NCBI GenBank assembly: GCA_965240325.2
Contig: OZ251242.1
Location: forward strand, 744,001-808,000
Direction of reading: 5' to 3'
Length of the DNA stretch: 64,000 bases
DNA from: Rebecca billardiae RCC1528
Taxonomy: Eukaryota > Protista > Haptophyta
Under the pieces are notes generated by a model. The model saw only the letters and a program-made list of their open reading frames with translations, ran no database searches and was not told the origin of the DNA. A program made the translations under genes and the position numbers. This document shows, piece after piece, positions 12,104-58,378 of the stretch; position 1 is the stretch's first letter; each line of letters starts with the position of its first letter.

Positions 12104-12305
<202 letters not shown>

Positions 12306-18833: not shown

Positions 18834-18907
18834 TAACTGCTACTACAATATAGTAGCCGGCCGGCGTCGGGCGGCCGACCACCACCGAGTGAATTAATAT
18901 ATATATA

Positions 18908-20878: not shown

Positions 20879-21135
20879 TATATATTATATATATATATAT
20901 ATATATATTCTATATATGTGTCTGCTGCACCGTCTTAGGAGCCTGACGCTACTTGCCCGTTGCATACCACGTCGTTATATATATATATATATATTATTTA
21001 ATAATAGATGTCAATGATGCTGACCGGAGCAGACGACGCATCAGCAGCGTCAATGCATGCTGAGGTGTAGCCTGGGACTCATGGAGATCCAGCAGCAGCA
21101 GTAGTCCTCATGCTGGCAATCGTGCCGGCACTGAG

Positions 21136-32668: not shown

Positions 32669-32740
32669 CGTGAACTCGCGAGCCAGAGCTCCAGATGGGG
32701 CGTCCTCGCCGGACTTGGCCTGCCGAGGCGTTACCAGTAG

Positions 32741-33849
32741 CAAGGGTGTCCAGGGTCCGCAACAGCCAGTGCGCAGCGCGGCAGAGGCTGTGACATCGCG
32801 AGGTCGCCGCTCGCCAGTGGGACTCGCCCGCCCGCCGCCGTGCACGGCGGCGGAGCCGCTCGCGCCGTGCGCTCCTGCGGCCGTCGGATCGGGCTGCGTA
32901 GGCGGCGCGCGGCTTGGGCCGTCGCAGAGCCACCCAGCGCCCCTCTCTGCGCCGCGCGCCTTCCTCGTCCTCGCCTCCTCCGCGCCTTGGAGCAGCACGC
33001 ACACGCGCGGCGCCGCACAAAGGCAGCCCAGGCGCTCGCGTGCAAGCGTGCGCGTGCGCAGCGCGACGGGCTCGACTCGGGGCTCGCGCCGCTGCGGGGG
33101 CATGCAGCACCATCCCATGCGCGCGCGACGCCACCTCGAGCCTGCGCATCGCTGTGACCGTCACGCCCCAAATGCTCACACGTCCTCGTGTTAAAGTAGG
33201 CCCAATCTGACCAGAACCTGCCATGCGTCAGGACAACTTCTTAGGCAAGACACGATGACAGCTACGACGCGGCGCTTCTCAGCAAGCGTGGAGACCACAA
33301 GAGAAGCGCACGCAAGCATGACCGTCTCCGCATCGATCGCGTCGACGCACTCAAGGCCCGTTGTGGAAGCTTCCGTCGCACGTGTGATGATGCCAAGTCA
33401 GACCATTTTGTAACGTGCATCAGCGTGCACTGACAGTCAAACGCGCAGGTTCGAGGTGGCGTCGCGCGCGCATGGGATGGTGCTGCATGCCCCCGCAGCG
33501 GCGCGAGCCCCGAGTCGAGCCCGTCGCGCTGCGCGCGCGCACGCTTGCACGCGAGCGCCTGGGCTGCCTTTGTGCGGCGCCGCGCGTGTGCGTGCTGCTC
33601 CAAGGCGCGGAGGAGGCGAGGACGAGGAAGGCGCGCGGCGCAGAGAGGGGCGCTGGGTGGCTCTGCGACGGCCCAAGCCGCGCGCCGCCTACGCAGCCCG
33701 ATCCGACGGCCGCAGGAGCGCACGGCGCGAGCGGCTCCGCCGCCGTGCACGGCGGCGGGCGGGCGAGTCCCACTGGCGAGCGGCGACCTCGCTCTGTCAC
33801 AGCCTCTGCCGCGCTGCGCACTGGCTGTTGCGGACCCTGGACACCCTTG
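32741..33849. mobile_element. Foldback P/Galileo-like non-autonomous element FB-A, 1109 bp, 7-bp TSD CCAGTAG
   Basis: CCAGTAG|CAAGGGTGTCCAGGG...CCCTGGACACCCTTG|CCAGTAG; arms 32741-33147 and 33443-33849 (407 bp); 295-bp loop. Confidence 0.92.
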
Positions 33850-34023
33850 CCAGTAGGTCCGGCCTCGTCGGCCTCGAGTCTCGGCCTTGGTTGACGAGTT
33901 ACTGGCGATTTCGCAGCATCTCGACCGCATCTGAAAGGGCGCCCGCGCCGAGACTGCAACGCTTCTGCCTCCCGGCGCGCACGCCGTCCGCCAGTCGCCG
34001 AGCCGCACGCACGAGGACCTCTG

Positions 34024-35118
34024 ATGTCGATGGGCCAGCTCAGCAGCCGTGGCCGCCCTGCCGAAGATGGCCGCGCCGACGACGGCGTCCGCACGCTCGT
34101 GCAGATGGGCTTCGAGCCGGCGATGGCGCGCGAGGCGCTCGCGGCAGCCGCTGGCGACGTGAACGCGGCCGCCGAGCTGCTGCTCTCGTCCTCGCGCGAG
34201 CGCGCGGCGCGCGAGGTGCCGGCACGGCCGTCAGAGGCCGATGAGCGCCGCCAGCGCGCGCTGCTCGCCGCGCAATCGCGCGCGGCCTCCTCGCACGCCA
34301 CGCGTGCCCCGGCCAGCACCGGCCGCGGCGGCGCTGCCGCTCAGGCGGCGCGCGGCGTGGCGGCGGCGGCGGCGCGCAGCGTCGCGCCGCCCGCTCGACG
34401 CGCGCCGTCCCGCGAGGAGCGCATCGTGAGCTCCGCGCGCCAGCTCGCCACGATGCCGCAGTCGCTCGACCTGCTCATCACCTCGCTCACGCGCGTGCTC
34501 GCGCATCCGGGAGACCCCAAGTACCAGCGCGTGCCAGTGAACAACCCCAACTTCAAGCAGCACGTCGTGGACGCGCCGGGCGGGATGGAGCTGCTCGCCG
34601 CGGTGGGGTACGAGCGCCGCGACGACGCGCTCGTCCTCCGCGCGCACGACCAGTCCGTCCTCGAGCTCGCGCTCTCCGCGCTCGAGGGCGAGCGCGCCGG
34701 CTCTCGTTATGTGGAGGCCAAGGAGGAAGCGCTGCTGTCGGAGGCGCTGCAGGCGAGCAGGGCGGAGTGGGACGAGAGCGAGCGGGCGCGGCGCGCGGCG
34801 GCGGCGGCGCGCGTGCCCAAGGAGCCCGAGGACGGCGCGGCGGGCAACACGCTCCTCTGCTTCCACCTGGGCAAGTCGAAGGAGCGATCTCGCACCATCT
34901 GGCGCCGCTTCGAGTCGTGGAACACTCTGGAAGAAATCATTGCGTTCGTGGAGTCGACGACGCCGTTCGTGGTGGGCAAGACGGCGCACCTGTACGACAT
35001 CACGCTCGCGACGCCGACGCGGCTGGACGAGCGCCTCGAGATCGGGCGCACGCTGCAGGTGCTCAACCTGTGGCCGAGCGGCCACCTGCGCGTGCAGCCG
35101 ATTGTGAGCGCCGCCTGA
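34024..35118 (+). CDS. UBA-PUB-UBX-like p97/Cdc48 adaptor
   Basis: LVQMGFEPAMAREALAAAAGDVNAAAELLL (UBA); VLAHPGDPKYQRV..NNPNFKQHV..GGMELLAAVGY (PUB); VPKEP...RRFESWNTLEEI...LNLWPSGHLRV (UBX). Confidence 0.88.
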   Translation: MSMGQLSSRGRPAEDGRADDGVRTLVQMGFEPAMAREALAAAAGDVNAAAELLLSSSRERAAREVPARPSEADERRQRALLAAQSRAASSHATRAPASTGRGGAAAQAARGVAAAAARSVAPPARRAPSREERIVSSARQLATMPQSLDLLITSLTRVLAHPGDPKYQRVPVNNPNFKQHVVDAPGGMELLAAVGYERRDDALVLRAHDQSVLELALSALEGERAGSRYVEAKEEALLSEALQASRAEWDESERARRAAAAARVPKEPEDGAAGNTLLCFHLGKSKERSRTIWRRFESWNTLEEIIAFVESTTPFVVGKTAHLYDITLATPTRLDERLEIGRTLQVLNLWPSGHLRVQPIVSAA

Positions 35119-35479
35119 CAGCGCTCCAGCTGTGGCTGACTGGCTGTCGGTGCCGCCGATGCGCGGCCGCCGACGCCGCGGGTGCCATGCGGGCCAAGCA
35201 CGACGCGTGAGACCATGCCGATCAGAGCGGTGCTGCCGACGGCGTCACGTGGCCACCACGTGCCAGCACGTGGACACGATGTGCCAGCGTGCTGGCGCCG
35301 CCCTCAGCCATCAAGCGGCCAGCGGCCAGCGCCGCCGTCGCGGACGTGGCCCGTCGCCGTCGGCCGTCGGGCTCACTCTACACTAGGCCTAGCGGTAGGG
35401 CCGTGCTTGTCGCCCTGTCGGGCCGCCGACAAAGATTTAGTTAGGACTGGCATCAGCAGCACCATCAGCATTGGCAGCC

Positions 35480-36447
35480 GGCCTGTTTTAATTCTACTGT
35501 AATCTCGCCTGCCTGAGCTGTGTGCGTCTCTTATTCTTAGTAAACTGTACGAGAGCCCAACGGCGACATGCCGACATCCGCCAAAACGCGGCAAAATGGC
35601 GGCTGCTTGGCCGCTGGTGCGGTGCCGGCGCGATTGCGGAGTACTGATGGCACGTCGTTGGCGCATTCTCGTACTAGCGCGCTGACCTGTAGCGAAAGAT
35701 GTTGCCATGGCATGCTGCTTAGCCTTGCCTGGTGCTTCGCCCTGACACAGGGGTCAGTCGCGGCGCACGGTTGTGTGACGATCGTCGCCGAGGTGGCAGC
35801 TGCGGGCTTGCTGCAAGCTGCAGGCACTCTACCTTGGCTACGTCGCGCCCGTGTCAGTTGGCGACTCTGAACAGGTGATGAACAGATAGACTGCAATCGC
35901 CACCAGCTCTACAAGCTCCTCCGCCACTACTTTGTCGGGCTTGAGATGCTTCCGTTGCGTGCCGCTCGCATGCAGCTTGCCGCCTGCATTTGAACGTGAT
36001 CGTGGCAGGCTGGTTGACGTGGATGCTCAGGCCTCGTCGGCGTAGACTACGATAGGATGCGTGCAACGCGCACTCATGACGCGCGGAAAGGCATGCACAC
36101 GCGTTCTCGCGCATCTGGCAGGCTGCAGCCTTGGCCAAGATGAAGAACAAGCCTGCCAGTGCCTCGCCGCGCGAGCGCGAGCGCGCGGAGAGTTCTGCGA
36201 TCCGACCCATGGTGTTGGATGTACCTCGTGTGCGACAACGACGAGGCGGACGAGCGCCGCAACTGGATTCGTGCACTCACCGGTCACCGAGGAGTGCACG
36301 AATCGCATTCCTCACGCACGTGGAGGCCGCCATCGGCCGTGAGAGGTACATCCAACGAGGCGTGACCGGTGACACCGATTCCCACTGGCGGGCACGGGTT
36401 TGTCGCCGTGACATAGTAAATGGAATCTGGTAGAAATAAAACAGGCC
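35480..36447. mobile_element. Candidate short-TIR element, 968 bp, apparent 4-bp TSD AGCC
   Basis: AGCC|GGCCTGTTTTAATTCTAC ... GTAGAAATAAAACAGGCC|AGCC (18-bp inverted repeat, 1 mismatch). Confidence 0.55.
35496..35549 (-). repeat. Dispersed 48-nt unit, copy 2, plus the first 6 nt of a next unit
   Basis: 35502-35549 is the exact reverse complement of 22833-22880, followed on the minus strand by TACAGT. Confidence 0.95.
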
Positions 36448-36798
36448 AGCCGCTGTATACCTGTGTCGTTAAATCATAGAATGGGTATACTGCCCCGCCA
36501 CAAGGATGCGAGTTCCAGGCATCACTCACCCAGACCCCAGTCACCTACTCGGCAATCGCGTCACGATCATCACTGTCAAATGTGTAACCTGTCTGCTGAT
36601 GTCTGGATAATAGCGTGCGATGAAGGATGGCGCGGCAACCTGCCACCGTGAGCCTTACGCACGTTAAAACAAATAAACTGTAACGTAACAGCCGCAGTTG
36701 CACAATTATTTATCCGCGCACCAAATTCCTTGTGGGCAGGCGCGGAGCCGCGGACGTGGAGTCGTGGACAGCGTTAGACAGCGTGGGCGCGTTGCGCA

Positions 36799-37797
36799 AT
36801 GGCTTCCCCCAGCAAGTCATGGGTGCCGCTGGCAAGGCGGCAGGCTGAGGTGCACGACAGCGAGGCGGACGTGCAGCGCGCCATCCGCAAGCTCGCAGAC
36901 GCATCGAACGGCACCGTGCTGACCCAGCTCACCAGCGCCGTGCGGCACAAGCTCCAGACCCTCGCCGAGCGCATCGACACGCTCGAGGATGAAGCGATGG
37001 TGGCTGATGACGCGGTCGCGGCCGAGGCGGCGCTCGGCACGATCGCGGCGCACCGCGCGGAGCACTCACGGCTCTCGCACGATCTACGCACAAAGCTCGT
37101 CGCCGCTCGCGGCATCGTCGCCGTGCGCATGGAGGAGCAGCGCGCGAGCGCGAGCGCGCGCGAGGCGGCGCCTGCTGACGAGAGCGGCGCAGAGGCGGAC
37201 GAGTCGGCAGACGATGGCGGGCTGCCAGCGCGGTCGGCCGTGCAGTCCGCGGTCGAGGCAACGGAGGCGCTGAAGCGCACGCGCAAGCTGATGGCGAGCG
37301 AGGTCGCGCGCACAGAGCAGGCGCTCTCCACGCTGCATGAGTCTGGCGGCACGCTGCGCAGGGCGGCTGATGAGCACGATGCGATCGCAGACGGAGTGGG
37401 CAGCGGCTCGAAGACGCTCCGGCGGATTCGCAGGCGGGAGGCGATGGACAAGGCACTCACGTGGGGCTCGTTCGGCATGTTTCTGCTGGTTGTGCTCCGC
37501 GTCTTCCTTCGCCGCATGCCGTTGGCAGGCTTATGGCCGCTCGGTGTTGACCCCGCGAGTGCCCCTCGCGTCCTGTCGCCGTCATCGCCGCCCGACCACC
37601 TGCGCCACTCGGAGCTGGAGTCGCTGCCCGTGCACGACGCTGCCGTTCAGGAGAAGCACAGCGTTCTGGGGGACAGCGCTCGTGACGCAGCGCCGCAAGG
37701 CGCATCGGAGAGCTCTCCCGTGGACGCCTCTGACGAGACACGAGGTGAGCTCGCTGCCGATTCTCAAGAGCAACAGCGAGCTCGCGACGAGTTGTGA
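36799..37797 (+). CDS. SEC20: Sec20/BNIP1-type ER SNARE with lumenal tail ending RDEL
   Basis: ATEALKRTRKLMASEVARTEQALSTLHES..TL, REAMDK + TM helix + RRMP; C-terminal RDEL. Confidence 0.82.
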   Translation: MASPSKSWVPLARRQAEVHDSEADVQRAIRKLADASNGTVLTQLTSAVRHKLQTLAERIDTLEDEAMVADDAVAAEAALGTIAAHRAEHSRLSHDLRTKLVAARGIVAVRMEEQRASASAREAAPADESGAEADESADDGGLPARSAVQSAVEATEALKRTRKLMASEVARTEQALSTLHESGGTLRRAADEHDAIADGVGSGSKTLRRIRRREAMDKALTWGSFGMFLLVVLRVFLRRMPLAGLWPLGVDPASAPRVLSPSSPPDHLRHSELESLPVHDAAVQEKHSVLGDSARDAAPQGASESSPVDASDETRGELAADSQEQQRARDEL

Positions 37798-38332
37798 CCC
37801 TGGCGCGAGCCTTCGCTGCCAGCCATCCGGTTCTGGGCGAGCCAAGTCCTCCACGTCAGGGAGTGCGGGGTGCAACTGTCCGGCTAGAGTGGACAACGCC
37901 TGTGGGCGGCGCCCGTCAGTCAGACTGCGAGTCCGACACCGAGCGGGCCGCGCTGGCCTGATGCGAGTGCGACGCCGCGCACGCTCCCGACTCACCTCCC
38001 GAGGATGCTGGATGGTGTCCGGGTTAGACCCGTCTGCCACTCAGTCTCACTCTGCCAGCGCAGGCGGTGAGTGGTGCCGCGCTGATGATGTATCAGCATC
38101 AGCTACTTCATCATCATGTCAGCAGCTAGCACTCATCGCGTCGTCAATCAGTAGCGCAGCAGTCGGCCCGACTGATGATGCTGACTGTAGAGTGTAGTAC
38201 TCAATTACACGCGCGCGCTGATCCGCCATCGTCACCCGATCGTGATCGATACCTGTAAGGCGCCGAGGGCTCGTCGGTAATCCGCCCCCGCCGGCGGCAG
38301 CGGTGCCGGAGTAGTGGAAGAGGCGGCGCTAG

Positions 38333-39913
38333 TTAATTCTCAATGGCTGCCTGTGCGCACCACTCGATGCAGTGGGGCTTGTGCACCTTCCACGAGCTGC
38401 GCAGGTGCTCACGCGAGCAGAAGACAGCCACGTGGCACCGCTCGCACTTCTTCAGACCGCTGCCCGTGCGTCCGCAGGTGATGCAGCACTGGGAGACCAC
38501 CTCGCGCACGCCCGCTACCGCAGCTAGCCCAGCGCACGCGGTATCTCTGAGGTTGGGGTCGAGCTCTTGGCCACGGCGCAGCAGCCGCGCGCCCTCCTCC
38601 ACGTCACGCTCCACTCCCACACCCTGAAGCGTCAGCGACCCCAGCGAGACGTGCGCACGTGCGTTCCCGCCGTTAGCAGCCAGGCGGTACCAGCGCGTCG
38701 CCTCGCCACAATCATGCTGCACACCCTTGCCTTGCAAGTAGCACAAGCCCAGATTGCACTGCGCCTCAGCATAGCCCTCCTCGGCCGCCAGCCGGTAGAA
38801 GCGCACCGCCTCTGCCATATCCTGCTGCACACCATTGCCGCACGAGTAGTGCACGCCCAGATTGTACTGCGCTGCAGCAACGCCCTGCTCGGCCGCCAGC
38901 CGGTACAAGCGCATCGCCTCGCTCAAATCCTGCGTCACATCCTTGCCTGTGCTGTAGCAAGCGCCCAGACAGAACCGTGCTTCAGCATGGCCCTGCTCGG
39001 CCGCCAGCCGGTACAAGCGCACCGCCTCTGCCATATCCTGCTGCACACCATTGCCGCGCGAGTAGTGCACGCCCAGATTGTACTGCGCGTCAGCAACGCC
39101 CTGCTCGGCCGCCAGCCGGTGCAAGCGCGCCGCCTCTGCCATATCCTGCTGCACACCATTGCCGCACGAGTAGTGCACGCCCAGATTGTACTGCGCTGCA
39201 GCAACGCCCTGCTCGGCCGCCAGCCGGTACAAGCGCATCGCCTCGCTCAAATCCTGCGCCACATCCTTGCCTGTGCTGTAGCAAGCGCCCAGACAGAACC
39301 GTGCTTCAGCATGGCCCTGCTCGGCCGCCAGCCGGTACAAGCGCACCGCCTCTGCCATATCCTGCTGCACACCATTGCCGCGCGAGTAGTGCACGCCCAG
39401 ATTGCACTGCGCTTGAGCATCGCCCTGCTCGGCCGCCAGCCGGTACAAGCGCACCGCCTCGCTCCAATCCTGCTGCACACCCGCACCTTGCGCGCAGCAC
39501 CAGCCCAGATTGCGCTGCGCTTCAGCACAGCCCTGCTCGGCCGCCAGCCGGTACCAGCGCGCTGCCTCGCCCATGTCCTGCTGCACACCCTCGCCACGCG
39601 CGTAGCACCGGCCCAGATTGCGCTGCGCTTCAGCACAGCCCTGCTCGGCCGCCAGCCGGTACCAGCGCGTGGCCGCCTCGAGGTCCACGGGCTGACCAAG
39701 CTCGCCGGCCAAGCAGATGTCGCCCATTCTCGCCTGCGCATCGGCAAAGCCGCGCTCAGTGGCGAGCGTGTACAGGCGAAAGGCTTCGCGCTCGTCCTGC
39801 GCGACGCCGTCACCGATGTCAGCCCGCCGCGCCAGAAGGAACGCCGCACGCGCGTCGCCGCGCCCCGACTTGCGCCGGAGGAGCCTAACCGCCGCGCTAG
39901 CATCCGTCGCCAT
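38333..39913 (-). CDS. Sel1-like repeat protein (~12 repeats) with C-terminal MYND zinc finger
   Basis: 36-aa AQYNLG.HY..G.GV.QD..EA.R.YRLAAEQG repeats; CITC...LKKCERCHVAVFCSREHLRSSWKVHKPHC. Confidence 0.93.
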   Translation of the reverse strand: MATDASAAVRLLRRKSGRGDARAAFLLARRADIGDGVAQDEREAFRLYTLATERGFADAQARMGDICLAGELGQPVDLEAATRWYRLAAEQGCAEAQRNLGRCYARGEGVQQDMGEAARWYRLAAEQGCAEAQRNLGWCCAQGAGVQQDWSEAVRLYRLAAEQGDAQAQCNLGVHYSRGNGVQQDMAEAVRLYRLAAEQGHAEARFCLGACYSTGKDVAQDLSEAMRLYRLAAEQGVAAAQYNLGVHYSCGNGVQQDMAEAARLHRLAAEQGVADAQYNLGVHYSRGNGVQQDMAEAVRLYRLAAEQGHAEARFCLGACYSTGKDVTQDLSEAMRLYRLAAEQGVAAAQYNLGVHYSCGNGVQQDMAEAVRFYRLAAEEGYAEAQCNLGLCYLQGKGVQHDCGEATRWYRLAANGGNARAHVSLGSLTLQGVGVERDVEEGARLLRRGQELDPNLRDTACAGLAAVAGVREVVSQCCITCGRTGSGLKKCERCHVAVFCSREHLRSSWKVHKPHCIEWCAQAAIEN

Positions 39914-40518
39914 GATTGTGCTGGGGACGTGATGCACGTCGCGAGATCTGACGAGCCTCGCGATGGCGTCGGCCGGAATGCCCCCCCGCAGCCACGTCCC
40001 TGGGCGGAGGGCGGCGCAACGCCGCGGCGCGTGCGCTCAGGCGGCGGCGAGGTGCGCGCCTGCACGCACCGGTCACATGTGGCCCTGCTCCGCGCGTCCG
40101 CGGCCGAACAGCTGCGCTCCATCGCCCGCCCGCCCGCTCGCGCGTGTGGCGTGCTGCTGCGGCTGCGCGGGGTGGCCGCGTACCCTCGCGGGGGCGCGCG
40201 CGCGTGGCATGGCCGAGGGTGGCCAGGCGGGCACCGCGCGCGAAGGGTGTCCGCGTCCTTGGGCCGTTGGTACAGAATAAATGAGTGGCGCGGACGGTCA
40301 ACCGCTCCAAATCATCAGCCTCTGGGCCTGAGTGTGGCCCGGATTTCAATACTAATAGTCTGATGACTGATTCCGCGGCGCGAACGCCCTCCGCGGCTCG
40401 GATATTAGTGATATCGCGCCGCCGGGACAGGCGTCACACTGACTTCTGACCCTGATCGGCAACAGCGAGCAATTAAGTACGACGACGCATCATCAGCTTC
40501 GCGGAGGCGTCGCCATCG

Positions 40519-41751
40519 TTAGTTCTGCATGCGGATGCCGTCGTCCCATCGGAAGCCGACCCCGCTCCCGATCCAGACGCCCTGGCCGAGCGGGTTGGCC
40601 CCGAACACGTTGAGCGCGGGCGGCAGGCCGTGCGGCGGGTCGAAGTTGACCATCGCCTTAACGGTCGTGCGGTGCAGGACGCGAAGCCCCTGCTTCGACG
40701 CCGCCTCGTGCGCCTCGGGCGCGGCGCGGTGGGCGATGGCGAGGTTGTCGATGAAGACCATGTCTCCCTCCTCATACTCGTACGCGAGAGTGTACGCGGG
40801 CGCTCCCGCCGGCAGCCGCTGGCGCTCGGGGGCGGTTTTGTGCGGGGAGCCGTCGGGCAGGCCGGCATTGAGGAGGTCGTTGTACTGGTTGAAGAGCGCG
40901 CGCATCTCGCCCGCCTCGAGCAGGCGCAGCGAGCGCTCCTCGCTCCCCGCCTCCCCCGCGACCTCGAGCACCGCGCCCGTCATCCCCAGGTGGAGGTACA
41001 CGGAGCGCCGGCCGGAGATGGGGTGCTCGTGCACGAGCGGGTGGAGCACGCCCGAGTTGGAGTTGACGGACACGTACCGCGACCACCGCGTCTGTAGCTC
41101 GGGCGGCAGCACGTCGTACGCCACGCCCTGGTGCGCGAAGAGCGTCGCGCCGCCCGCCTCGGGCACGCGCACGATGTGGTAGCCGACGTGCGAGAAGACG
41201 CCGCGCTCGAACGAGCCGTCGTTGTGCCACTGGGGGCCGACGCCGAGGATGCCGACGTCGCGGTCGTTGGCGAGGCGGAAGATGTGCCGGTTCGGCGCCT
41301 GCGGGTGCACGCCGTGCGTGGAGTGGATCTCGCGCCCTCCCCAGTACTCGGACGCTCGCACCTGCTCGTCGCCGCTCAGCACGCCCTGCCCCTTGAAGAC
41401 GAGGAAGCCGCGCGCCGCCATCTCGAGCTGGAGCGCCTCGAGCACGTCCTCGTCAGGCTGAGTTCGCAGGTCGAGCCCGCTCACCTGCGCGCCGAGGGGC
41501 TCAAGGGGGGCGATGGCCACCCCCTTCGACGCGAGGAAGCGCACGCGCTCCTCGCTGAGCGGAGGCACGCCCGCCGAGCACGTCTCCGAGAAGGCGATGG
41601 TCGGGATGGGCGCGGCGGAGACGCTGGACGAGCCTGAGGACATGGTGGCATGCGCTCGGCACGCGAGCGACGCGGCGAGCCAGCCGAGGCGGCGCACGGC
41701 GAGTGCGGCGAGCGGAAGCGTGCGTGCGAGGAAGAAGCCGGGGCCGCACAT
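40519..41751 (-). CDS. TauD/TfdA family Fe(II)/2-oxoglutarate dioxygenase (start 41751 or 41643)
   Basis: PLGAQVSGLDL, WHNDGSF (HxD), HPLVHEHPISGRRSVY, GDMVFIDNLAIAHRA, RVLHRTTV. Confidence 0.92.
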   Translation of the reverse strand: MCGPGFFLARTLPLAALAVRRLGWLAASLACRAHATMSSGSSSVSAAPIPTIAFSETCSAGVPPLSEERVRFLASKGVAIAPLEPLGAQVSGLDLRTQPDEDVLEALQLEMAARGFLVFKGQGVLSGDEQVRASEYWGGREIHSTHGVHPQAPNRHIFRLANDRDVGILGVGPQWHNDGSFERGVFSHVGYHIVRVPEAGGATLFAHQGVAYDVLPPELQTRWSRYVSVNSNSGVLHPLVHEHPISGRRSVYLHLGMTGAVLEVAGEAGSEERSLRLLEAGEMRALFNQYNDLLNAGLPDGSPHKTAPERQRLPAGAPAYTLAYEYEEGDMVFIDNLAIAHRAAPEAHEAASKQGLRVLHRTTVKAMVNFDPPHGLPPALNVFGANPLGQGVWIGSGVGFRWDDGIRMQN

Positions 41752-41961
41752 CCAGCGGACCCAGCCCTGGGACCCAGCGCGGTCGTTCTCACGGGCCGAC
41801 TTGGGTGGCTTCTTTTGCATCCGCCAGCAGCCCCCTCCCCAGCGGGTGGGGTCGTTGGCGCCCCCTTGCACACGCGCGCGCAGAGGCTCGAGGCGCCGAG
41901 CTGCTGCCGCGCGCGGCCCGTGGGTGCCACCCCCCGGCCCTCGCACGCCAGCGAGCGCGCG

Positions 41962-44060: not shown

Positions 44061-44182
44061 CTGAGTCTGAGTGCCGCCAACTGTATAGCTGCCTCAGCGC
44101 ATCTGAGCGGATCGCCGATGATTCGCCAGGGTACCGTATGACGATCGTTTGTTGACGATGAGTTTCGCCGCGTCAATCGGAC

Positions 44183-44265
44183 TACAGTTTACTAAGAATA
44201 AGAGACGCACAGCCTGACCCACAGCTCAGGCAGGCGAGATTACAGTTTACTAAGAATAAGAGACG
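44183..44265 (+). repeat. Dispersed 48-nt unit, copy 3 (1.5 tandem units, 10-nt insertion)
   Basis: 44183-44240 full unit with AGCCTGACCC inserted; 44241-44265 partial unit; ends 13 nt before ATG 44279. Confidence 0.95.
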
Positions 44266-44278
44266 ACCGACGGACACA

Positions 44279-49252: not shown

Positions 49253-50135
49253 GCGCGCTGCGGCGGAGCGGACGGCGGCATGCTGCCGTGCCGATGGTGC
49301 TCGCTGGCGAGCATCGTGTGTGCGCGCATGACTTCCGCTCCCTCCCTTCAGAACCGCGCAGCGTCGATCTCACTCAGGTTGGCGGTGTTCAAGGTGGCCT
49401 CTCACATCACGATGAAGGGGCCGCCGCTTTGCTTCCGCTCCGGACCCTCGGACCCGTCCCGGCCACGGGGCCCGCGCCCGACACGGGCGTGAACGTGTCC
49501 AACGCGTGGTCGCATCCGCCCTGCTCTCTCAGACTCAGTATCTGGCTGCTGACTTGAGTCTTGACGACCAAACGACAGCGCGCGCGCATGGCGGTTGATC
49601 GATTTCGACATCGAACGCCATTCATCAGAATCCGAAGCAGTGAATACACAAATAAATAAATTGTAAATTTATAAAAATAATATTTAAAACTAATTAAGTC
49701 GCGCTCATTTTATAATAATATTCGCATTATTTTTATTAATTGATTATCTGTACTGTATCATAGTAACCTATATATAGACCAGTGCCCAGTCGCGTGATGG
49801 CTCGACGACTGCGCGATCACGAATACTACTACTCGATCAGACTCTGATGAGTCCTGATGGAGCCCCTCAGACAGTCAGAGTCAGACTGTAGTGGGACGAC
49901 GGGCGCCGCGCTGTCTAAGTGTCTACGAGTAGTGGGCCCGCGCCGCGCGCGGCCGGCGGGGCGGCAGCACCGCGGTGCAGTCGGCAGTCGCCGGCGGCTG
50001 CGCGGGACGGCGGGGTGATTCGCGCTTGGTGATTGGTCAGCGTGCCAGCCCCAGTGAAGTGAGCGCGTGCGACTGCGGCCGTCGACGGCGGCCGCCGTCG
50101 ACATCCGGCAGAGGCGTCTGGAACGCCGAGACCTC

Positions 50136-51128
50136 TCAGTCCGAGTCCCCCAGCGCAGCACGGCGCCGCTCTGCGCTCGCGAGCAGCCTGCGGTACTGGG
50201 CACCGTTTGCCCACTTGTTCAGCTCACTGGCCCGCAGGATCGGGAGCGGGTGTGTCAGGCTCTGCGCCTGCGAGCGCGAGATCGCGCCGCCAAGCCGGCT
50301 CTTCGCGCTCTCGTCGAAGCGCTGCACCTGCCGCAGAAACGCCTCCGTCGACAGCTCTGCGCCGAACGCTGCGCTGCCGCCGGCCAGCTTGAGGATGACC
50401 GAGACGACGACGGCCGGGTCCTGGGCGACGAGCAGCGCGGCGCGGTCACAGGTGAGCTCCGCCGAGCGGCGCCACGAGAGGAGCGCCGCGTCGAGCGCCG
50501 CGCCCAGCCGCCGGTCGATCACATCCGCGCCCACCGCGAGCACGTTGGCCACTGTGATCCATAGGCCGTGCTCGCAGACTAGGTGGCCGCACTCGTGCGC
50601 GAGCACGGCCTGCGTCTCGGCCGGGTTGAGCAGGTCGAGGAGGGAGGTGTGCACGACGATGAACGGCCGCCGCCCGTCGACGGCGAGCGTGTAAGCGTTC
50701 GGGTACGGCGACTGCCGCACGTACAGGTCCGGTGGCGTGCGGATCCCGAGGATGGCGCATGCCTCGATCAGCTTAGCATGCAGCGTCGGCATCTGGTCTG
50801 AGGTGACCTGCACGCCCGAGGCGATGTTGTCGAGGAATGAGGCCTCTTCCACGACGGGGAAGAGCACGTTGCGCAGCGCCAGCTCGATCGGCCAGAAGCG
50901 CCGAAGGCCAGCGGTCGCGGCGAGGTCGTCTGGATGCTGGAAGTCGCTCGACTGCAGAGTCGGGAAGCGCAGCCGCTCGGCGGCGGGGGCGACGGCGGTG
51001 CAGAGCGCTCGGCGCGTGGCGGCGCTCCGGACGAGACGCGCAGGCGCGTTCGCGGCGCGTGCCGGGAGCTGCAGCGCGTGCGCAGCTCCCAACGTGAGGA
51101 GGACGGCGGCGGCCCCCATGGCCCACAT
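50136..51128 (-). CDS. M48 (HtpX/Ste24-like) zinc metallopeptidase, probably plastid-targeted
   Basis: Signal peptide; FQHPDD, LYVRQSPYPNAYT, QAVLAHECGH (HExxH), RSAELTCDRAALL, THPLPILRA. Confidence 0.92.
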   Translation of the reverse strand: MWAMGAAAVLLTLGAAHALQLPARAANAPARLVRSAATRRALCTAVAPAAERLRFPTLQSSDFQHPDDLAATAGLRRFWPIELALRNVLFPVVEEASFLDNIASGVQVTSDQMPTLHAKLIEACAILGIRTPPDLYVRQSPYPNAYTLAVDGRRPFIVVHTSLLDLLNPAETQAVLAHECGHLVCEHGLWITVANVLAVGADVIDRRLGAALDAALLSWRRSAELTCDRAALLVAQDPAVVVSVILKLAGGSAAFGAELSTEAFLRQVQRFDESAKSRLGGAISRSQAQSLTHPLPILRASELNKWANGAQYRRLLASAERRRAALGDSD

Positions 51129-51194
51129 GCTCCCCTCGGACCTCCCCCAGCAGTCGTCTCTCGAAGATCGAAAGCGCGCGAAAGAAAGCTGGTC

Positions 51195-52303
51195 CAAGGG
51201 AGTCAAGGGTGCCCGCGCCCCAGTGGCGCGCTCGGCGGATGTTGGCACACAGATTTTTGCCCGCGGCCTGCGGCGGGCGGCGGCGAGGGCGTGCTCCGGT
51301 GGCGGAGCGAGCGCACGGGGCACGGCGCTGCGGGCGCGGATGTGCCCGCGAAGCCGGCGCGTGCGGACGGGCAGTTGCGGGAGAGCATATGGCGCCCTCC
51401 TGCGCCGCGCGACTTGCGCCACGCCTCTTTCGCCTCGGCTCAGAGCAGCGCGCACGCACGCGCCGCCTCAAGGCCAGCCTTGCCGCGCCGCAGCCGGCCG
51501 CGCGCGCGCCGTGCGCGGCGTGGTCGGGAAGGAGCGGGCGCTGCTGCCGGGCGAGATGGCGACATCATGTGCGCACGCCATGCCGCCCCGCCACGCCTTG
51601 ACGAGTGCGTCGTCGGTCCGTTTGCATGCCTCTTTGACTTGTCACAAATGGTGTGCACGGCCTCGCGGTCGTGACCCTTGGCGGGACGATCATTGAGACA
51701 CAGAACAGTGCCAGACGGGCACGCGGGCTACTCTTACATGAATGTTCATCACCGCGTGGTCATGCAGAAGTGCTGGGTGCGACGCTTTCCTCGCGCTGAT
51801 GCTCTTTCATCATCTTCTTCGAGCTCAGGTCTGGCTTCAGGCACGACAAGTAATCAGCGCTCGTCAACAGCTGTGCGGATCCGTTCTCGTGCCCTTTCGC
51901 GGCGCCACGGGGCGGCATGGCGTGCGCACATGATGTCGCCATCTCGCCCGGCAGCAGCGCCCGCTCCTTCCCGACCACGCCGCGCACGGCGCGCGCGCGG
52001 CCGGCTGCGGCGCGGCAAGGCTGGCCTTGAGGCGGCGCGTGCGTGCGCGCTGCTCTGAGCCGAGGCGAAAGAGGCGTGGCGCAAGTCGCGCGGCGCAGGA
52101 GGGCGCCATATGCTCTCCCGTAACTGCCCGTCCGCACGCGCCGGCTTCGCGGGCACATCCGCGCCCGCAGCGCCGTGCCCCGTGCGCTCGCTCCGCCACC
52201 GGAGCACGCCCTCGCCGCCGCCCGCCGCAGGCCGCGGGCAAAAATCTGTGTGCCAACATCCGCCGAGCGCGCCACTGGGGCGCGGGCACCCTTGACTCCC
52301 TTG
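51195..52303. mobile_element. Foldback P/Galileo-like element FB-B, 1109 bp, 7-bp TSD GCTGGTC
   Basis: GCTGGTC|CAAGGGAGTCAAGGG...CCCTTGACTCCCTTG|GCTGGTC; arms 51195-51590 and 51908-52303 (396 bp); 317-bp loop. Confidence 0.93.
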
Positions 52304-52310
52304 GCTGGTC

Positions 52311-53488
52311 CAAGGGCGGTAAGGGCTGTCAACTCCCAGTGGCGGCGGTGACAGAGGTTGGTCAAGGGCGGTAAGGGCTGTCAACTCCCAGTGGCGGCAG
52401 CGCCAGAGGTTGGCTCCCGCTTCGCTGCTGCGCGGCCTCGCTCCAGCGACTAACTCTCGTGGGCGCCCGCCCTGGAGGGCGAGTGGGGCGCGCACGGCGC
52501 GAGCTCCTGCGGCCGTGTACGCGCGCGCGGAGGCGGCGCGCGCGGCTGGGCAGGTGCTAGGGAGTGCATGTCGCCCTCCCACGCCGCGCGCCTTGCTCGC
52601 CGCCGCTGTTGCCGCGCCTGGGGCCAGCGCGCACGCGTGCGCCGCCTCCAGAGCCAGCCTCGGGCCCGCGGCAGCTGGCCGCGCGCGTGTGGTGCGCGGT
52701 CTGGTCGGCGCGAGTCGGTCGGGGCCATCGGGCGAGGTTAACATACTATAGACGCGCGCTCTGCCGCCGCGCGCCGCCGCGCACGGCTGTCATGGGTCGA
52801 CACGCAAGCATCTTAGGTCTGACACGAACTGCAGCACGAATGCGAAAATGCTCATGTTTGGACGCTCATGGAGACGCTGAAGAGCACAACAGACGAGCGC
52901 AGGCGATGGAGAGCGGGGCAATGCACTCATCGGACGCCGTACACGCACCCAATGCGGCCGCCTATCACGCGCATGGGCGCTCACTGTCGCGTGTTCGAGC
53001 TCATTTATGCTTGTCGTGCATTCATCGATCAGCTTCCTTCAACAGCTTCACGGGATGGTACCGGGCCCATGCGCGGCGGCGCGCGGCGGCAGAGCGCGCG
53101 TCTATAGTATGCGAACCTCGCCCGATGGCCCCGACCGACTCGCGCCGACCAGACCGCGCACCACACGCGCGCGGCCAGCTGCCGCGGGCCCGAGGCTGGC
53201 TCTGGAGGCGGCGCACGCGTGCGCGCTGGCCTGAGGCGCGGCGACAGCGGCGGCGAGCAAGGCGCGCGGCGTGGGAGGGCGACATACACTCCCTAGCACC
53301 TGCCCAGCCGCGCGCGCCGCCTCCGCGCGCGCGTACACGGCCGCAGGAGCTCGCGCCGTGCGCGCCCCACTCGCCCCCCGGGGCGGGCGCCCACGAGAGT
53401 TAGTCGCTGGAGCGAGGCCGCGCAGCAGCGAAGCGGGAACCAACCTCTGTCACCGCCGCCACTGGGAGCCCTTATGGTACCGCCCTTG
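52311..53488. mobile_element. Foldback P/Galileo-like element FB-C, 1178 bp including a 52-bp duplicated left end, same TSD GCTGGTC
   Basis: GCTGGTC|CAAGGGCGGTAAGGG...TACCGCCCTTG|GCTGGTC; arms to ~52783 and from ~53070; terminus repeated at 52363. Confidence 0.92.
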
Positions 53489-53583
53489 GCTGGTCGTTGC
53501 TCGGTGTTCCAGAGCTAGCGCGCGCGGGAATGCCAACCTTGAGTTCGGAGGCAGCCGGAGCGGCCGGACCCGAGCACGCCACG

Positions 53584-54681
53584 ATGGCGGCGTTCGCGCC
53601 CGCGCTCGTGCTGCTCGCGCTATGCGCGATACCCGTTGAGGTGCTCACGCCATCGACGCTCCGTGCGCCGCCACCGGTCGAGCTCGGAGACGGGGCCACC
53701 GGCGTGCACGTCGTGCACACCCGCTTCTGCCTTGGCCAAGGCGACCAGCCCGCGCTCGTGGCAGGCCGGATGGAGCTGCTGCGTGCCATCTGCCTGCCGA
53801 GCTTGTTTGCGCAGACCGAGCGCGCATTCATGTGGCTCTTCTACATCGACATGACGCTTACTTCTCCGGCCGTGCGCGAGCTCGTCCAGCTGCTCGGCGC
53901 GGACCCACGCTTCGCCCTCGTGCGCATGCGCACGACGTGGCAGACCATCGTCAGCCGCAAGACTGAGCACGTGTACAACTTGCCTGTGGCGAAGCAGCTG
54001 ACACTCGCCGGCATCGACGCACGCCCGAGCGGCGCGCGAGGCGCGGAGCTCGTGTACGTCTCGACGCGGCTCGACGCGGACGACGGCTTGCCCGCTGGCG
54101 CGATGGCGTACCTGCACGGCCAGGTCCGAGCGCTGCGCCCGCGGCTGAGGCCGTCCGACCCGAAGCTCGATCGCGGCCTCGTGTGCTGGATGGCTGCGCT
54201 CGACTGGTACGCGTCGGACGACGGGCGGCCGAACGTGTACCGGAAGTACTCGGTGAAGCACTGCGTGTCGGTCGGGCTCACCACCTTCTCGCCAAACCCG
54301 CGCGCGCTCACCGCGCACTCGCCGTCGCACACGCGCGCGCGCAACGCGATGCCCGCGCACACGGTCGCGCCAGCTGAGGAGGAGCTGATGCCGCTGCGTG
54401 GGCGCTCGGTCACGTCCGACTCGCTCGAGGGCATGCTCAAGACGAGCACGCAGTCGCGCATGCCGGAGGTGCCCGCACCCGCCGACGAGGTGCTGGCGCG
54501 AGTGCACAATACCTCGCGCGGCATGCTGCGGAGATGCGGCGCGGCGCTGCTCGCACAGAGCGCGCAGATCGCGCGAGAGCAGCTCGCGCGCCGGTGCCTG
54601 GCTGGGTTCGGCTGCCGCTCGGAGACGCAGAAGAAGCTGCAGCTGGCGGCGAGCGGCGCCGTCGTCGCCGAGGGCCCTTGA
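53584..54681 (+). CDS. Putative rhamnosyltransferase-like (Rhamno_transf-type GT-A) protein with signal peptide
   Basis: ALVLLALCA; HVVHTRF, RMELLRAICLPSLFAQTERAFMWLFYID, STRLDADDGL. Confidence 0.8.
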   Translation: MAAFAPALVLLALCAIPVEVLTPSTLRAPPPVELGDGATGVHVVHTRFCLGQGDQPALVAGRMELLRAICLPSLFAQTERAFMWLFYIDMTLTSPAVRELVQLLGADPRFALVRMRTTWQTIVSRKTEHVYNLPVAKQLTLAGIDARPSGARGAELVYVSTRLDADDGLPAGAMAYLHGQVRALRPRLRPSDPKLDRGLVCWMAALDWYASDDGRPNVYRKYSVKHCVSVGLTTFSPNPRALTAHSPSHTRARNAMPAHTVAPAEEELMPLRGRSVTSDSLEGMLKTSTQSRMPEVPAPADEVLARVHNTSRGMLRRCGAALLAQSAQIAREQLARRCLAGFGCRSETQKKLQLAASGAVVAEGP

Positions 54682-54844
54682 GAGCTGTGTGCTGGCATGC
54701 GCGTGGAATACCCATCAGTAAATAGTAGTATGGGTACAGTACCCCCATACAGTACAGTAGTGAGTCTTGACTCTTGAGCAGAGAATGATCGTCGTCGTCT
54801 TTCGCTCTTCATCAGACCGTCGTCGTCGCCGTGCGCGTCGACGC

Positions 54845-56329
54845 ATGTCGGGCGAGAGCATGGCGGGGATTACCCGTCGGCCTGCCTCGCCGCCGGCGTC
54901 GGTGCCGCTGGTGGGACCCAACGACGGCTTCCTGGCGCACATGGAGCATCTGAGGGCCGAGCTGCTGCCCGGCCACGAGAAGCGCGAGTCGATGCAGCCC
55001 ATCGCGCGCGCCATCCAGGAGCGCGTCAGTCTGTACTTCCACCGGCGCCAGCTGGGCGACGGCGCGGCGCAGCAGCTGCTGTCGAGCGCGCTCTCGGACA
55101 TGAGCGTGTGCCTGGCGGGCTGCGAGCCGTTGAGCGAGCTGCGCTGGAGCCTGCTCTCGCACCCCGCGCAGGCGCTCGCCGGAGCGCTCAGCTTCGAGTC
55201 CTTCCTCGCGACCGGCACGCTCGGCGCGCGCCCGGTGCTCGCGTCAACGTGGGCTCCGGTCGCGCCGGTGGATGCGGCCGTCACGGGGCAGCCCAGCGAG
55301 GGCTCCGCTGGCGGGCTGCAGGATACCGAGTGGCTCGGCGGCATGATCTCCGCCGCGCACGAGATCGGGCGCTACGCCTCTGGCCGCGCGACGGCGGGCG
55401 ACGCGAGCTCTGTCACGCTCGCGCTGCGTAGCGTGCGCGCGCTGCACGACGGGCTGCTCGGCTTCGACCTGCGGAACGGCCCGCTGCGCAAGGCGTTCGA
55501 CAGCCTCAAGTACGTCGTGCGCCGGCTCGAGGACACGCTGTACGACCTGAGCCTGTACGCGCCCGACATCACGGCGGCCGTGCCGCCGCCGGACCCGAGC
55601 GAGCCGCCGCCCATCGACACCGGCGCGCTCGAGGCGGCGCGCGCTCGTTACGAGGCGGAGGATGCCGCGCGAGAGGGTGCGATCAAGGCGTCGCGCGACG
55701 TGCAGAAGGCGGCGAAGCAGGCGATCGCGAGCCTGCACCGCGGCGACCTCCCGCGCGCCGAGCAGCTCCTCGCCACCGCCACGGCGGGCGCGCGCGAGCT
55801 GCAGCAGAGTCTGAGCGGCCAGCTCGCGCACCTGCGGCGCGCGTCGTTCGCGCAGGGCATGATGGAGGAGCTGGCGGAGGCATGGCTGCTGCACGGCTGG
55901 ACGCGCGAGCCGTCGGCGTGCGTGCTGCTGCGCCGGGACGCGCCGCCCCTCGTCGGCCTCGAGCTGCTCCCCGCCGAGTACCTCGGCGGCCTCTGCGATC
56001 TCGTCGGCGAGATCGGCCGTACCGCGGTGCACGGCGCGACCGCGCACGACTACGCACTCGTCAACCACGTGCACGCGACGGCGGTGGCCGTGCAGACGGC
56101 CGCGCTCACGCTGGCGAGCGCGTGGCCGCGCCGGCTCGAGGGCAAGCTGGGCGCGCTGCGCACGGCGATCAACAAGCTCGAGCGGCTGCAGTACGAGGGC
56201 GCGCTCATCGCGCGCGGCGCGCATCGCGCGCCGTCCGCAGTCGCAGGGACCGGCGATGAAGCAGGTGGACCTGGCATGCTGCCGGCAAAACGCCGCGCGG
56301 ACGACGAGGAGGGCGACGAGAATATGTGA
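54845..56329 (+). CDS. Tandem two-domain translin-family protein (translin-like + TRAX-like)
   Basis: Domain 1 ends LRNGPLRKAFDSLKYVVRRLEDTLYDLSL; domain 2 REGAIKASRDV...MEELAEA...EYLGGLCDLVGEIGR. Confidence 0.88.
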   Translation: MSGESMAGITRRPASPPASVPLVGPNDGFLAHMEHLRAELLPGHEKRESMQPIARAIQERVSLYFHRRQLGDGAAQQLLSSALSDMSVCLAGCEPLSELRWSLLSHPAQALAGALSFESFLATGTLGARPVLASTWAPVAPVDAAVTGQPSEGSAGGLQDTEWLGGMISAAHEIGRYASGRATAGDASSVTLALRSVRALHDGLLGFDLRNGPLRKAFDSLKYVVRRLEDTLYDLSLYAPDITAAVPPPDPSEPPPIDTGALEAARARYEAEDAAREGAIKASRDVQKAAKQAIASLHRGDLPRAEQLLATATAGARELQQSLSGQLAHLRRASFAQGMMEELAEAWLLHGWTREPSACVLLRRDAPPLVGLELLPAEYLGGLCDLVGEIGRTAVHGATAHDYALVNHVHATAVAVQTAALTLASAWPRRLEGKLGALRTAINKLERLQYEGALIARGAHRAPSAVAGTGDEAGGPGMLPAKRRADDEEGDENM

Positions 56330-56784
56330 CGCAATGCGGCACGGCGTGCAACGCCCTGGTGCCGCGGGCCTCTGGCATTTGCAACGCGAAACGTGCCACG
56401 CCCAGTGACGCGCTGCCGGCCTGCCGCTCAGCTTCCGCCCGTCGCCCCGCGGGCTGTTCCACCCGCGGCGTCCAGGTAGGCTACGGCCGTGGACTACTAA
56501 CTACTGCGGGGGCCGCGGCTTGGGACTGCGTTGCCGTTGGGTCGCTGGGGAGGCTCCTGGACCGTAGCCACAAGCGCAGCAGTGCAGTCAGCAGACAGCG
56601 GTCGTTACGATGCCAGTCACTTACTTCTAGGAGCCTACAGTGTAACCGACCGGTCCTGATAATGACCAGCAGTACTTCTCCCACCGGGCGGCCTGGCTGG
56701 TACTCTCCGCCATCGCACTCGCTCACGCGAGTCGGGCGGGCGGCGGCGAGTGCGATGGCTGTGCCCGCCGAGGTACGATGGCGG

Positions 56785-57204
56785 CAAGGGGAGTCATAAA
56801 GACTGGCCGCGGATGGACCTCAGGATGGAGGCCGTTTTGAACGCGCTCGCGCGCGGCGAGGTCAAGCGTGCAGGGGCGTTAGGCGCTGTGGGCCCCTTGA
56901 GGGCGTCAAGATGGACCGCGCCCAAGCGGATGTCGCCCCCTGGAGCGGCCTCTCCGCGCCGTGCGAGGCCGCGGCGCGCGGGCGGTACACGACCTCCTGT
57001 CTGACGGCCGAAGGTACGAGTGGTCGGCTCCCACTGCGCCTGCCAGCGGGCGAAGTCAGCGGCAGAGCGGCCGGGAGCCCCGCCATTTCCGCAAACGTGG
57101 CAAAATGTTTATTTTCGTGCAGTTTTGCGGGCAACGACCACTCGTACCTCGGGCCGTCAGGAAAAGCTATGGGAGTGTCGCCACATCGGCCAGTCTTTAT
57201 GATT
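56785..57204. mobile_element. Small CAAGGG-type MITE with damaged right end, 7-bp TSD ATGGCGG
   Basis: ATGGCGG|CAAGGGGAGTCATAAAGACTGGCCG ... CGGCCAGTCTTTATGATT|ATGGCGG. Confidence 0.65.
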
Positions 57205-57265
57205 ATGGCGGCGCAGTCCGAGGAGAGTACCAAGACACCCTTGCCAGTGCGGCCGGCAGCTCAGA

Positions 57266-58373
57266 TAGTAAGGTTCGGGGGGCGCCCCGGACTGCAGTCT
57301 GAAAGCTGCCCCTTCAACTTTAGTGGGCACGCTGTGGCCGCATGGCGGCCGGCCGCCCGCCGCCCACGCGAACAAAAGTCCGTGCGCGGGCGTGATGGGC
57401 ACGCGCGTGTCGATGGCGTAGGCCTGGCAGGTCCGTATGTGTCATGGCCGATCCCCAGGCGCGTTTTAGACCCCATCCCCGGCGCCTGAGGCACCACACA
57501 TGCTGGCGATGACAGATGTCGTGTTCAGCACAGGTTGCTGTGCACGCGCCGGTACGGCGGGGTGGTGCACACGGAGAGAGGGCCTAGAAAGGGGTGGCGC
57601 GCGTTCTCACAGGTCTGGTCTCCACTGACGTCGCCCAGCGCGCGCGTCGTGTGTCCCAGTAGGCTTGGAAGCTGCTTAAACACCGCTTATTCCACTATAC
57701 CACGAACACTCTTGCTTTTAAAACAAACATTACGCAACTGAGAGTTTTGTGTGTGGCAGGTGGCGATGGGGCAGAGCCATGGCATGAGCTCAATTCCAGG
57801 GCACAAGTAGCCGTCAAGTAGCCGGTGGAGCTGTCAGATTGCCCACGCAGGACACACAAGACCTAATGGGCTCCCTCTCTGCGAACTCTTCAGCCTGAAC
57901 GCCTCGCTGAGGGTACACGCCCAAGTGGTGCGTGTGTCAGAACAGTGAGCATGCTTTACCGTCAGCCAACAAGAAGCACTGAACAGGCCGCCCATCCTTA
58001 TGACGCGCGCGCCGGGCGACGGCAGTGGAGACCAGACCTGTGAGAACGCACGCCACCCCTTTCTAGGCCCTCTCTCCGTGTGCACCACCCCGCCGTACCG
58101 GCGCGTGCACAGCAACCTGTGCTGAACACGACATCTGTCATCGCCAGCATGTGTGGTGCCTCAGGCGCCGGGGATGGGGTCTAAAACGCGCCTGGGGATC
58201 GGTCATGACACATACGGACCTGTCAGGCCTACGCCATCGACACGTGCGTGCCCATCACGCCAGCGCACGGACTTTTGTTCGCGTGGGCGGCGGGCGGCCG
58301 GCCGCCATGCGGCCACAGCGTGCCCACTAAAGTTGAAGGGGCAGCTCCCGGACTCGGCCCCCGAACCTTACTA
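57266..58373. mobile_element. Foldback element FB-D, ~1108 bp, termini TAGTAAGG, no clear TSD
   Basis: Arms 57266-57648 and 58002-58373; ~350-bp loop; ends 5 nt before ATG 58379. Confidence 0.85.
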
Positions 58374-58378
58374 ATGAC

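Follow-up and report, generated by a model that had tools for sequence, protein, structure and literature searches.

Transposons of the P superfamily duplicate 7 or 8 bp of their target and begin with 5'-CANRG in Repbase-type classifications. The target duplication of hAT elements is 8 bp. During hAT excision a hairpin forms on the flanking DNA and no element tips are left behind, and the scars of Tc1/mariner elements keep 2-3 nt. BuT5 of the Drosophila repleta group is reportedly a non-coding element of ~1 kb that is moved in trans by a P-type enzyme with which it shares only its ends; it is said to be without 400-bp inverted arms, unlike the foldback elements described here. Galileo makes a 7-bp duplication at a palindromic target motif and possesses long inverted repeats, with copies in which two arms surround a non-homologous spacer (PMC4168063). 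An unusually long staggered cleavage of 17 nt sets P transposase apart from other cut-and-paste enzymes (PMC7776569). In this study, four foldback elements (FB-A, FB-B, FB-C, and FB-D) were analyzed in a 64,000-nt window of the genome of the haptophyte alga Rebecca billardiae RCC1528. The window is contig 25:744001-808000 of an assembly of 72 Mb with 41 contigs and a guanine-plus-cytosine (GC) content of ~70%. Our results indicate, with a probability of about 0.75, that FB-A, FB-B, and FB-C represent three subfamilies (A, B, and C) of one large, non-autonomous group of cut-and-paste elements with long inverted repeats and P/Galileo-like behaviour, and that FB-D is independent of this group.

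An inverted-repeat scan of window positions 32734-58373 identified exactly four long foldbacks of 1104-1126 bp, all with near-perfect arms of 370-408 bp and AT-richer loops of 280-353 bp (Table 1). The scan and direct reading of the sequence agreed on the places, and nearly on the lengths, that an earlier interpretation made from the letters alone (hereafter, the sequence-only reading) had given for them. The 7-bp target duplications reported there for FB-A, FB-B, and FB-C were exact (CCAGTAG for FB-A and GCTGGTC, three times, for FB-B and FB-C), and its observation that the loops are lower in GC also held (0.56-0.58 vs. 0.74-0.77 for the arms). The predicted fold of FB-A is a single 400-bp stem with -740 kcal/mol. 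The terminal doublet that had been noticed in FB-A to FB-C, CAAGGG-N4-MAGGG, has six exact matches in the window, which are at the ends of these three elements, vs. 1.6 expected by chance. Genome-wide, the terminal motif occurs 871 times (440 + 431) vs. 24 times (14 + 10) for the reversed control. The triple target arrangement around FB-B and FB-C was found again at locus L054 with the target CCTCAGC. In addition, FB-C is preceded by a 52-bp extra C-type end, and it is this outer piece, not the inner one, that the right end of FB-C matches. This extra end is probably the remnant of an older C copy that was hit ~50 nt from its tip by a second C copy; such a nested C-in-C insertion could later have collapsed by recombination, leaving the 52-bp tip.

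Whole-element searches of the assembly, whose copy counts are lower bounds for A, B, and C, identified at least 40 full-length copies of subfamily A with identities of 87-99%, at least 43 of subfamily B, at least 33 of subfamily C, and about 10 copies of the FB-D family (about 12 in all), one of which is virtually identical to FB-D. In all four cases, the loop was included. The loops, which the sequence-only reading had called unique, are thus each kept across tens of copies of their own family. Moreover, each element of the window is one copy of a family, so that uniform length among the copies of one family is only to be expected. Exact end counts for the genome were 102 for subfamily E, 94 for F, 97 for G, 169 for C, at least 134 for B, and 105 for I. 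With A added, the group as a whole totals roughly 450-500 elements in at least 8 subfamilies, or ~0.5 Mb of the genome, of which it occupies well under 1%.

The arms were compared as family consensus sequences of A, B, C, D, E, F, G, and I by local alignment against shuffled sequences. The arms of A, B, C, E, F, G, and I gave z scores of 14-40 against mononucleotide shuffles, with 115 for B-I, and of 10-35 against dinucleotide shuffles. For A, B, and C themselves the latter scores were 16-35. B and C arms also share matches of 162 nt at 73-76% identity that were visible in the first repeat scan. The multiple alignment of the arms is collinear across ~400 columns, with identities of 53-65% (typically ~57%) and 3-8 gaps per 400 columns, and its conserved blocks span the arm from the tip to the loop boundary. 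The closest relatives are B and I, whose arms are 84% identical and whose loops are alike. The statement that the elements show no similarity to one another is therefore contradicted by the homologous, collinear arms of A, B, and C. Judged from these alignments, the seven subfamilies A, B, C, E, F, G, and I inherited their arms from one ~1.1-kb ancestor and have since diverged; this is the outcome that the sequence-only reading had itself named beforehand as contradicting its proposal. Four more inverted repeats in the flanks of the loci read were considered as independent families and rejected: three of them belong to the group in truncated form, and any relationship of the fourth to it is weak at best.

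Among the 71 end pairs in the DNA read, 57 have an exact 7-bp duplication, and no other register fits. The 57 empty sites reconstructed from them yielded a target logo that is a weak palindrome, S-Y-Y-S-R-R-S. About 10 of these insertions lie inside or against sister elements, such as B into A, B into B, E into B, and B into F, and two further sites were used twice, as with FB-B and FB-C in the window. A site ~50 nt from C-type tips was hit repeatedly, and nesting at a tip plus 50 nt was found at loci L043, L065, L067, and L068 as well as in the composites of Table 1. Three local scars, in which a left tip is joined to a right tip, keep 5 + 5, 7 + 8, and 7 + 10 nt, each between exact 7-bp repeats; in the control, four shifted registers gave exact 7-bp repeats in 0 of 424 cases. 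All three are at most 35 bp from an element that is present today, so that the same small regions seem to be used again and again. Genome-wide, tip-to-tip joins (CAAGGG and then its complement within 14 nt) number 279 vs. 7 in the control, and the bases within these joins are family-specific, with up to 10 + 10 nt. The joins thus show that the elements excise and that the repaired donor site keeps several nucleotides of both tips. Such retained tips in turn argue for cleavage within the ends with a long stagger, of the kind made by P-element transposase. On this reading, the elements move as double-stranded DNA, duplicate 7 bp of the weakly palindromic target, often land in or beside sister elements, and, on excision, leave 5-12 nt of each tip. 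Close to FB-D, a 13-nt relic composed of A-type left and right tips is possibly an old excision scar, although its flanks are without a matching duplication.

Similar to Galileo, the group combines a 7-bp duplication, a palindromic target, and long terminal inverted repeats with many non-coding copies, in which two arms enclose a spacer that lacks homologues in databases. It also resembles Galileo in its diverged subfamilies and in other elements that are inserted at the termini (PMC4168063, PMC3573991). Galileo-type long repeats possess several transposase-binding sites along their length (PMC3688188), which could explain the conservation of whole arms in the group. Different from Galileo, however, whose arms vary widely and often contain tandem repeats, the arms here are uniform at ~400 bp and lack internal repeats. 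Furthermore, the target is GC-rich in the alga and the AT-rich GTANTAC in Galileo, transposase-bearing copies are known for Galileo whereas no transposase is tied to the ends here, and the host is a haptophyte alga instead of an insect (Drosophila). The group also shares with the Drosophila P element a palindromic GC-rich target, local and repeated insertion, and a donor site that keeps element tips, which in the P element follows a 17-nt staggered cut (PMC7776569). The P element, on the other hand, has an 8-bp duplication and inverted repeats of 31 bp, as compared to 7 bp and arms of ~400 bp here. The Drosophila Foldback type was considered and rejected, as it has a 9-bp duplication and arms of tandem repeats, whereas the elements here have a 7-bp duplication and arms of unique sequence without tandem repeats.

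All subfamilies of the CAAGGG group begin with CAAGG and so fit 5'-CANRG. Together with the 7-bp duplications, the palindromic target, and the scars that retain tips, these ends support the sequence-only reading in assigning FB-A to FB-C to a P/Galileo-type cut-and-paste system. In view of the implied long stagger and of the 7-bp duplications, target symmetry, and long arms, the enzyme would most likely be a P-superfamily transposase that is supplied in trans. A candidate source of P-type transposase was found at contig 21:1533082-1534365, where a 1322-codon open frame has an above-cut-off match (1533970-1534365) to PF21787, the N-terminal RNase-H half of P-type transposases. A weak match to PF21789, the C-terminal half, follows ~270 codons downstream in the same frame, a spacing in keeping with a GTP-binding insertion between the halves.

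FB-D had been regarded as part of the same system, but it does not belong there: it is flanked by TA instead of 7-bp duplications, its ends are different, and its arms gave z scores below 2 against those of A to I. In each of the five FB-D copies read, TA stands on either side and the ends are GTAAGG...CCTTAC. Genome-wide, 21 FB-D ends were found, which form 7 pairs that are all 1104-1117 bp apart; none of these pairs is long, and hence no autonomous partner was found by its ends. We regard FB-D as a separate foldback family, whose TA duplications would be of the Tc1/mariner type. Similar to Stowaway-like Tc1/mariner miniatures, it has TA flanks, is non-coding, and is low in copy number, but its arms of 370-380 bp are far longer than usual for them. 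When an empty site was sought among paralogous gene copies, similarity began only past the junction, and the flanking TA could instead belong to the element itself. Only a few bases separate the end of FB-D from the start codon that follows it, which is that of the first RING/F-box/RCC1-type gene in a tandem array (window positions 58372-58390). Alignment with the paralogues of this gene at 61125 and 63246 begins no earlier than the start codon.

Several results weigh against placing A to C in one P-type group with FB-D apart. No alignment was obtained between the loops of different subfamilies except for B-I and a few weak hints on the reverse strand; descent is demonstrated for the arms only, and the loops may have been replaced. 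Across subfamilies, the loops are nevertheless alike in length (267-329 nt) and in GC (0.56-0.58). FB-D matches A to I in length, in the sizes of stem and loop, and in GC contrast without being homologous to them, a coincidence for which descent gives no explanation. As for the enzyme, the CAAGG ends fit the hAT consensus as well and so do not discriminate. The retained tips place only a lower bound of ~10-12 nt on the stagger, as compared to 17 nt in the Drosophila P element. None of the listed E, F, G, C, B, I, or rare-variant ends is near the P-type frame of contig 21. Whole-genome profile searches placed no match to PF21787, PF21789, or the HMG box within the 4.6-5.1-kb elements with I-type ends, and the search for THAP, which was uninformative, gave no match anywhere in the genome. 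The link of the foldback ends to a P-type enzyme is thus one that we infer, no transposase being tied to the ends.

The similarity of FB-D to the CAAGGG group bears on two alternatives. Firstly, at least two unrelated transposase systems, the P-like group with 7-bp duplications and the TA-flanked FB-D, might have converged on one hairpin design. This is rather unlikely. The shared design would consist of ~1.0-1.1 kb with a GC-rich stem of 350-430 bp and an AT-richer loop of ~300 nt. If convergence were true, it would imply an optimum that the host or the mechanism imposes, such as mobilisation or survival that depends on a cruciform or hairpin, or a stem length limited by conversion.

Secondly, a real constraint on length or geometry, imposed by the transposition complex, by the hairpin or cruciform, or by chromatin, might act on foldbacks whatever their enzyme. 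Simple pair lengths were obtained from the end lists for ~250 pairs. About 85% of them fall within 1070-1150 bp, so that the sharp genome-wide peak at ~1.1 kb that the sequence-only reading had anticipated does exist. It resolves, however, into narrow family-specific modes: 1070-1109 bp for F (mostly 1077), 1104-1122 bp for I (mostly 1105-1108), 1107-1117 bp for B (mostly 1109), 1102-1119 bp for A, 1111-1130 bp for G, 1098-1140 bp for E plus four pairs at 1189-1215 bp, and 1120-1149 bp for C. The concentration of lengths, arms that are nearly gap-free at ~57% identity, the scarcity of shorter derivatives, and FB-D, which has unrelated arms and a different duplication and yet is 1104 bp long with a stem of 370-381 bp and an AT-richer loop of 351 nt, would all suit a constraint. 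Among the elements read, however, FB-D is the sole independent case; the seven CAAGGG subfamilies share ancestry, and their length is therefore inherited. The gap counts fit a neutral expectation, too. Copies of one family differ by 0.037-0.094 distinct indels per substitution, which predicts 7-27 indels per arm pair at the observed Kimura two-parameter (K2P) distances of 0.5-0.7; the 3-8 gaps found between families, together with arms of 396-424 bp, lie inside this range, near its lower limit.

Moreover, elements of other lengths that share these ends have multiplied. At least 12 copies were found of a 3.2-kb form, whose C-type arms span 148 bp and which has a 7-bp duplication of its own, and at least 8 of a 615-bp C form. 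A 2.35-kb composite, in which an E copy lies 56 bp from a C tip, was found 5 times in the same arrangement, and its two nested members apparently travel together on the outer ends. Other long pairs are nested insertions. Variants of the arm/loop boundary preserve the total length (408/296 or 428/259 in A and 396/317 or 403/303 in B). A constraint on length is therefore improbable, and the rule that the sequence-only reading had proposed for unrelated families does not stand, given that A to C are related, that forms of 0.6, 2.35, and 3.2 kb with the same ends multiplied, and that gap counts are as predicted. One ~1.1-kb ancestor plus few indels suffices for the length peak. Length would be kept as few master elements are copied, indels are rare, and homogenisation of the arms is length-neutral.

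Partial matches to the interior of the 3.2-kb family were found at contig 17:667439, contig 29:1133148, and contig 26:531816, which may be parts of longer relatives. At three loci, contig 3:1016650/1019057, contig 5:855541/857958, and contig 20:1202915/1205324, F-type ends of like orientation lie ~2.41 kb apart; this arrangement may represent a larger repeat with a foldback end, in direct copies, at either border.

A further alternative is that the CAAGGG group is moved by a non-P transposase, either hAT-like or from an undescribed superfamily that also makes 7-bp duplications. That no enzyme is linked to the ends, that CAAGG also fits the hAT end pattern, and that the Pfam searches gave a single P-type frame adjoining no listed end are consistent with it. 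The hAT superfamily was nevertheless rejected as a candidate: the duplication is strictly 7 bp and not 8 bp as in hAT, the scars keep 5-12 nt of both tips, which is unlike hAT-type excision, and the hAT dimerisation domain has only a single weak, broken match in the genome. A non-P enzyme is thus also an improbable explanation for the movement of the group. A metagenome scan with the 20-nt I-type tip gave two matches only, both by chance.

How the two arms of an element remain alike was addressed with variants from 27 A copies and 28 B copies. Private variants were mostly one-armed (29 vs. 9 in A and 28 vs. 3 in B), and inserted copies therefore decay arm by arm. Among the variants present in at least four copies, 18 were mirrored in both arms, 7 partly mirrored, and 12 one-armed in A; the corresponding numbers in B were 17, 6, and 7. 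The existence of shared one-armed variants shows that transposition copies both arms faithfully, and the mirrored majority shows repeated arm-to-arm conversion in active lineages. Occasional gene conversion of this kind would keep the two arms alike and leave their length unchanged. In addition, private AT-to-GC changes per AT site were ~3-4 times commoner in arms than in loops, although the counts were small, and we infer that GC-biased conversion raises the GC of the arms while the loops drift towards AT. That the foldbacks are instead host hairpin-RNA genes, i.e., sources of small RNA whose stem symmetry is selected for RNA pairing, is extremely improbable: near-perfect stems over 400 bp, many variants mirrored in both arms, and AT-richer loops would suit such genes, but against them speak the exact target duplications of copies that are dispersed in their hundreds, the scars of excision, insertions nested in one another, one-armed variants passed on to many copies, and the lack of an RNA family match.

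The loops contain stops in nearly all frames, and they gave no Pfam match (loop open frames) and no Rfam match (32-59 kb of the window). The suggestion that they are decayed coding DNA thus found no support; neither did the suggestion that they ferry host fragments, as none was found in any loop. The arms showed no codon periodicity and no conserved open frames. The long pairs at loci L065, L066, and L067 were considered as autonomous copies and rejected: L065 and L067 are nested insertions, and L066 belongs to the non-coding 3.2-kb family. These three loci gave no Pfam match and no coding-like base composition, and a search of solved structures with them returned nothing meaningful, only two chains of the SMR family with E values of ~0.2.

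A different repeat of 1.93 kb has at least 19 virtually identical copies, at L067:1896-3824, contig 35:619679-621608, and at least 17 other places, and so moved very recently. It occurs both as a nested insertion within an E copy and at a distance of 14 nt from a G tip. Elsewhere in the window, an (AT)n microsatellite with a short (GA)n part at 12087-12229 appeared as a perfect palindrome in the repeat scan. A 62-nt inverted repeat at 18901-18962 and 20824-20885, with arms that are 97% complementary and 1861 bp apart, possibly represents the ends of another transposon.

Table 1. Positions of the foldback elements, their parts and target duplications in the window, and of scars, composites, and longer forms elsewhere in the assembly (numbers without a prefix are window positions).
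Feature	Position	Strand	Length	Details
FB-A target duplication CCAGTAG, left and right copies	32734-32740; 33850-33856		7 bp	Read directly; only the 7-bp register fits
FB-A, non-coding foldback, subfamily A	32741-33849	+	1109 bp (407+295+407)	End CAAGGGTGTCCAGGG
FB-A arms	32741-33147; 33443-33849			99% complementary
FB-A loop	33148-33442
Target GCTGGTC around FB-B/FB-C, three copies	51188-51194; 52304-52310; 53489-53495		7 bp	Read directly
FB-B, foldback, subfamily B	51195-52303	+	1109 bp	End CAAGGGAGTCAAGGG; arms ~396 bp, loop 317 bp
Extra C-type end preceding FB-C	52311-52362	+	52 bp
FB-C, foldback, subfamily C	52363-53488	+	1126 bp	End CAAGGGCGGTAAGGG
FB-C arms	52385-52786; 53067-53468			97% complementary; loop 280 bp
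Relic of A-type tips	57231-57243		13 nt	4 nt of left tip + 9 nt of right tip; ~25 bp left of FB-D
FB-D, foldback of unrelated family	57268-58371	+	1104 bp (1108 bp with flanking TA pairs)	Ends GTAAGG...CCTTAC; arms ~381 and ~370 bp, loop ~351 bp
TA flanking FB-D	57266-57267; 58372-58373
Local scars	L025:1452-1468; L045:1457-1466; L049 ~1484-1498		10-17-nt joins
3.2-kb non-coding family	L066:201-3446 = contig 1:4365152-4368397			Plus 11 other copies
Composites	contig 7:3535269-3537616; 7:3929025-3931398; 12:1718856-1721213; 15:335963-338320; 1:945401-946589			Foldback 52-56 bp from the tip of another
Long element with I-type ends	contig 11:2633728-2638875		5148 bp
Long element with I-type ends	contig 20:98525-103171		4647 bp
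Long element with I-type ends	contig 8:3320995-3324350		3356 bp
Long element with I-type ends	contig 26:409786-413116		3331 bp

With these results, the idea of unrelated families held to one length falls, and no new system is needed to account for the elements of the window. Instead, a Galileo-like foldback group with ~450-500 recently active copies in at least 8 subfamilies is documented in a haptophyte alga. About 0.5 Mb of its genome can now be labelled consistently, and candidate autonomous partners are located by coordinates. Finally, scars that keep the tips of an element provide a way to recognise P-type cutting chemistry from sequence only, without a transposase gene.

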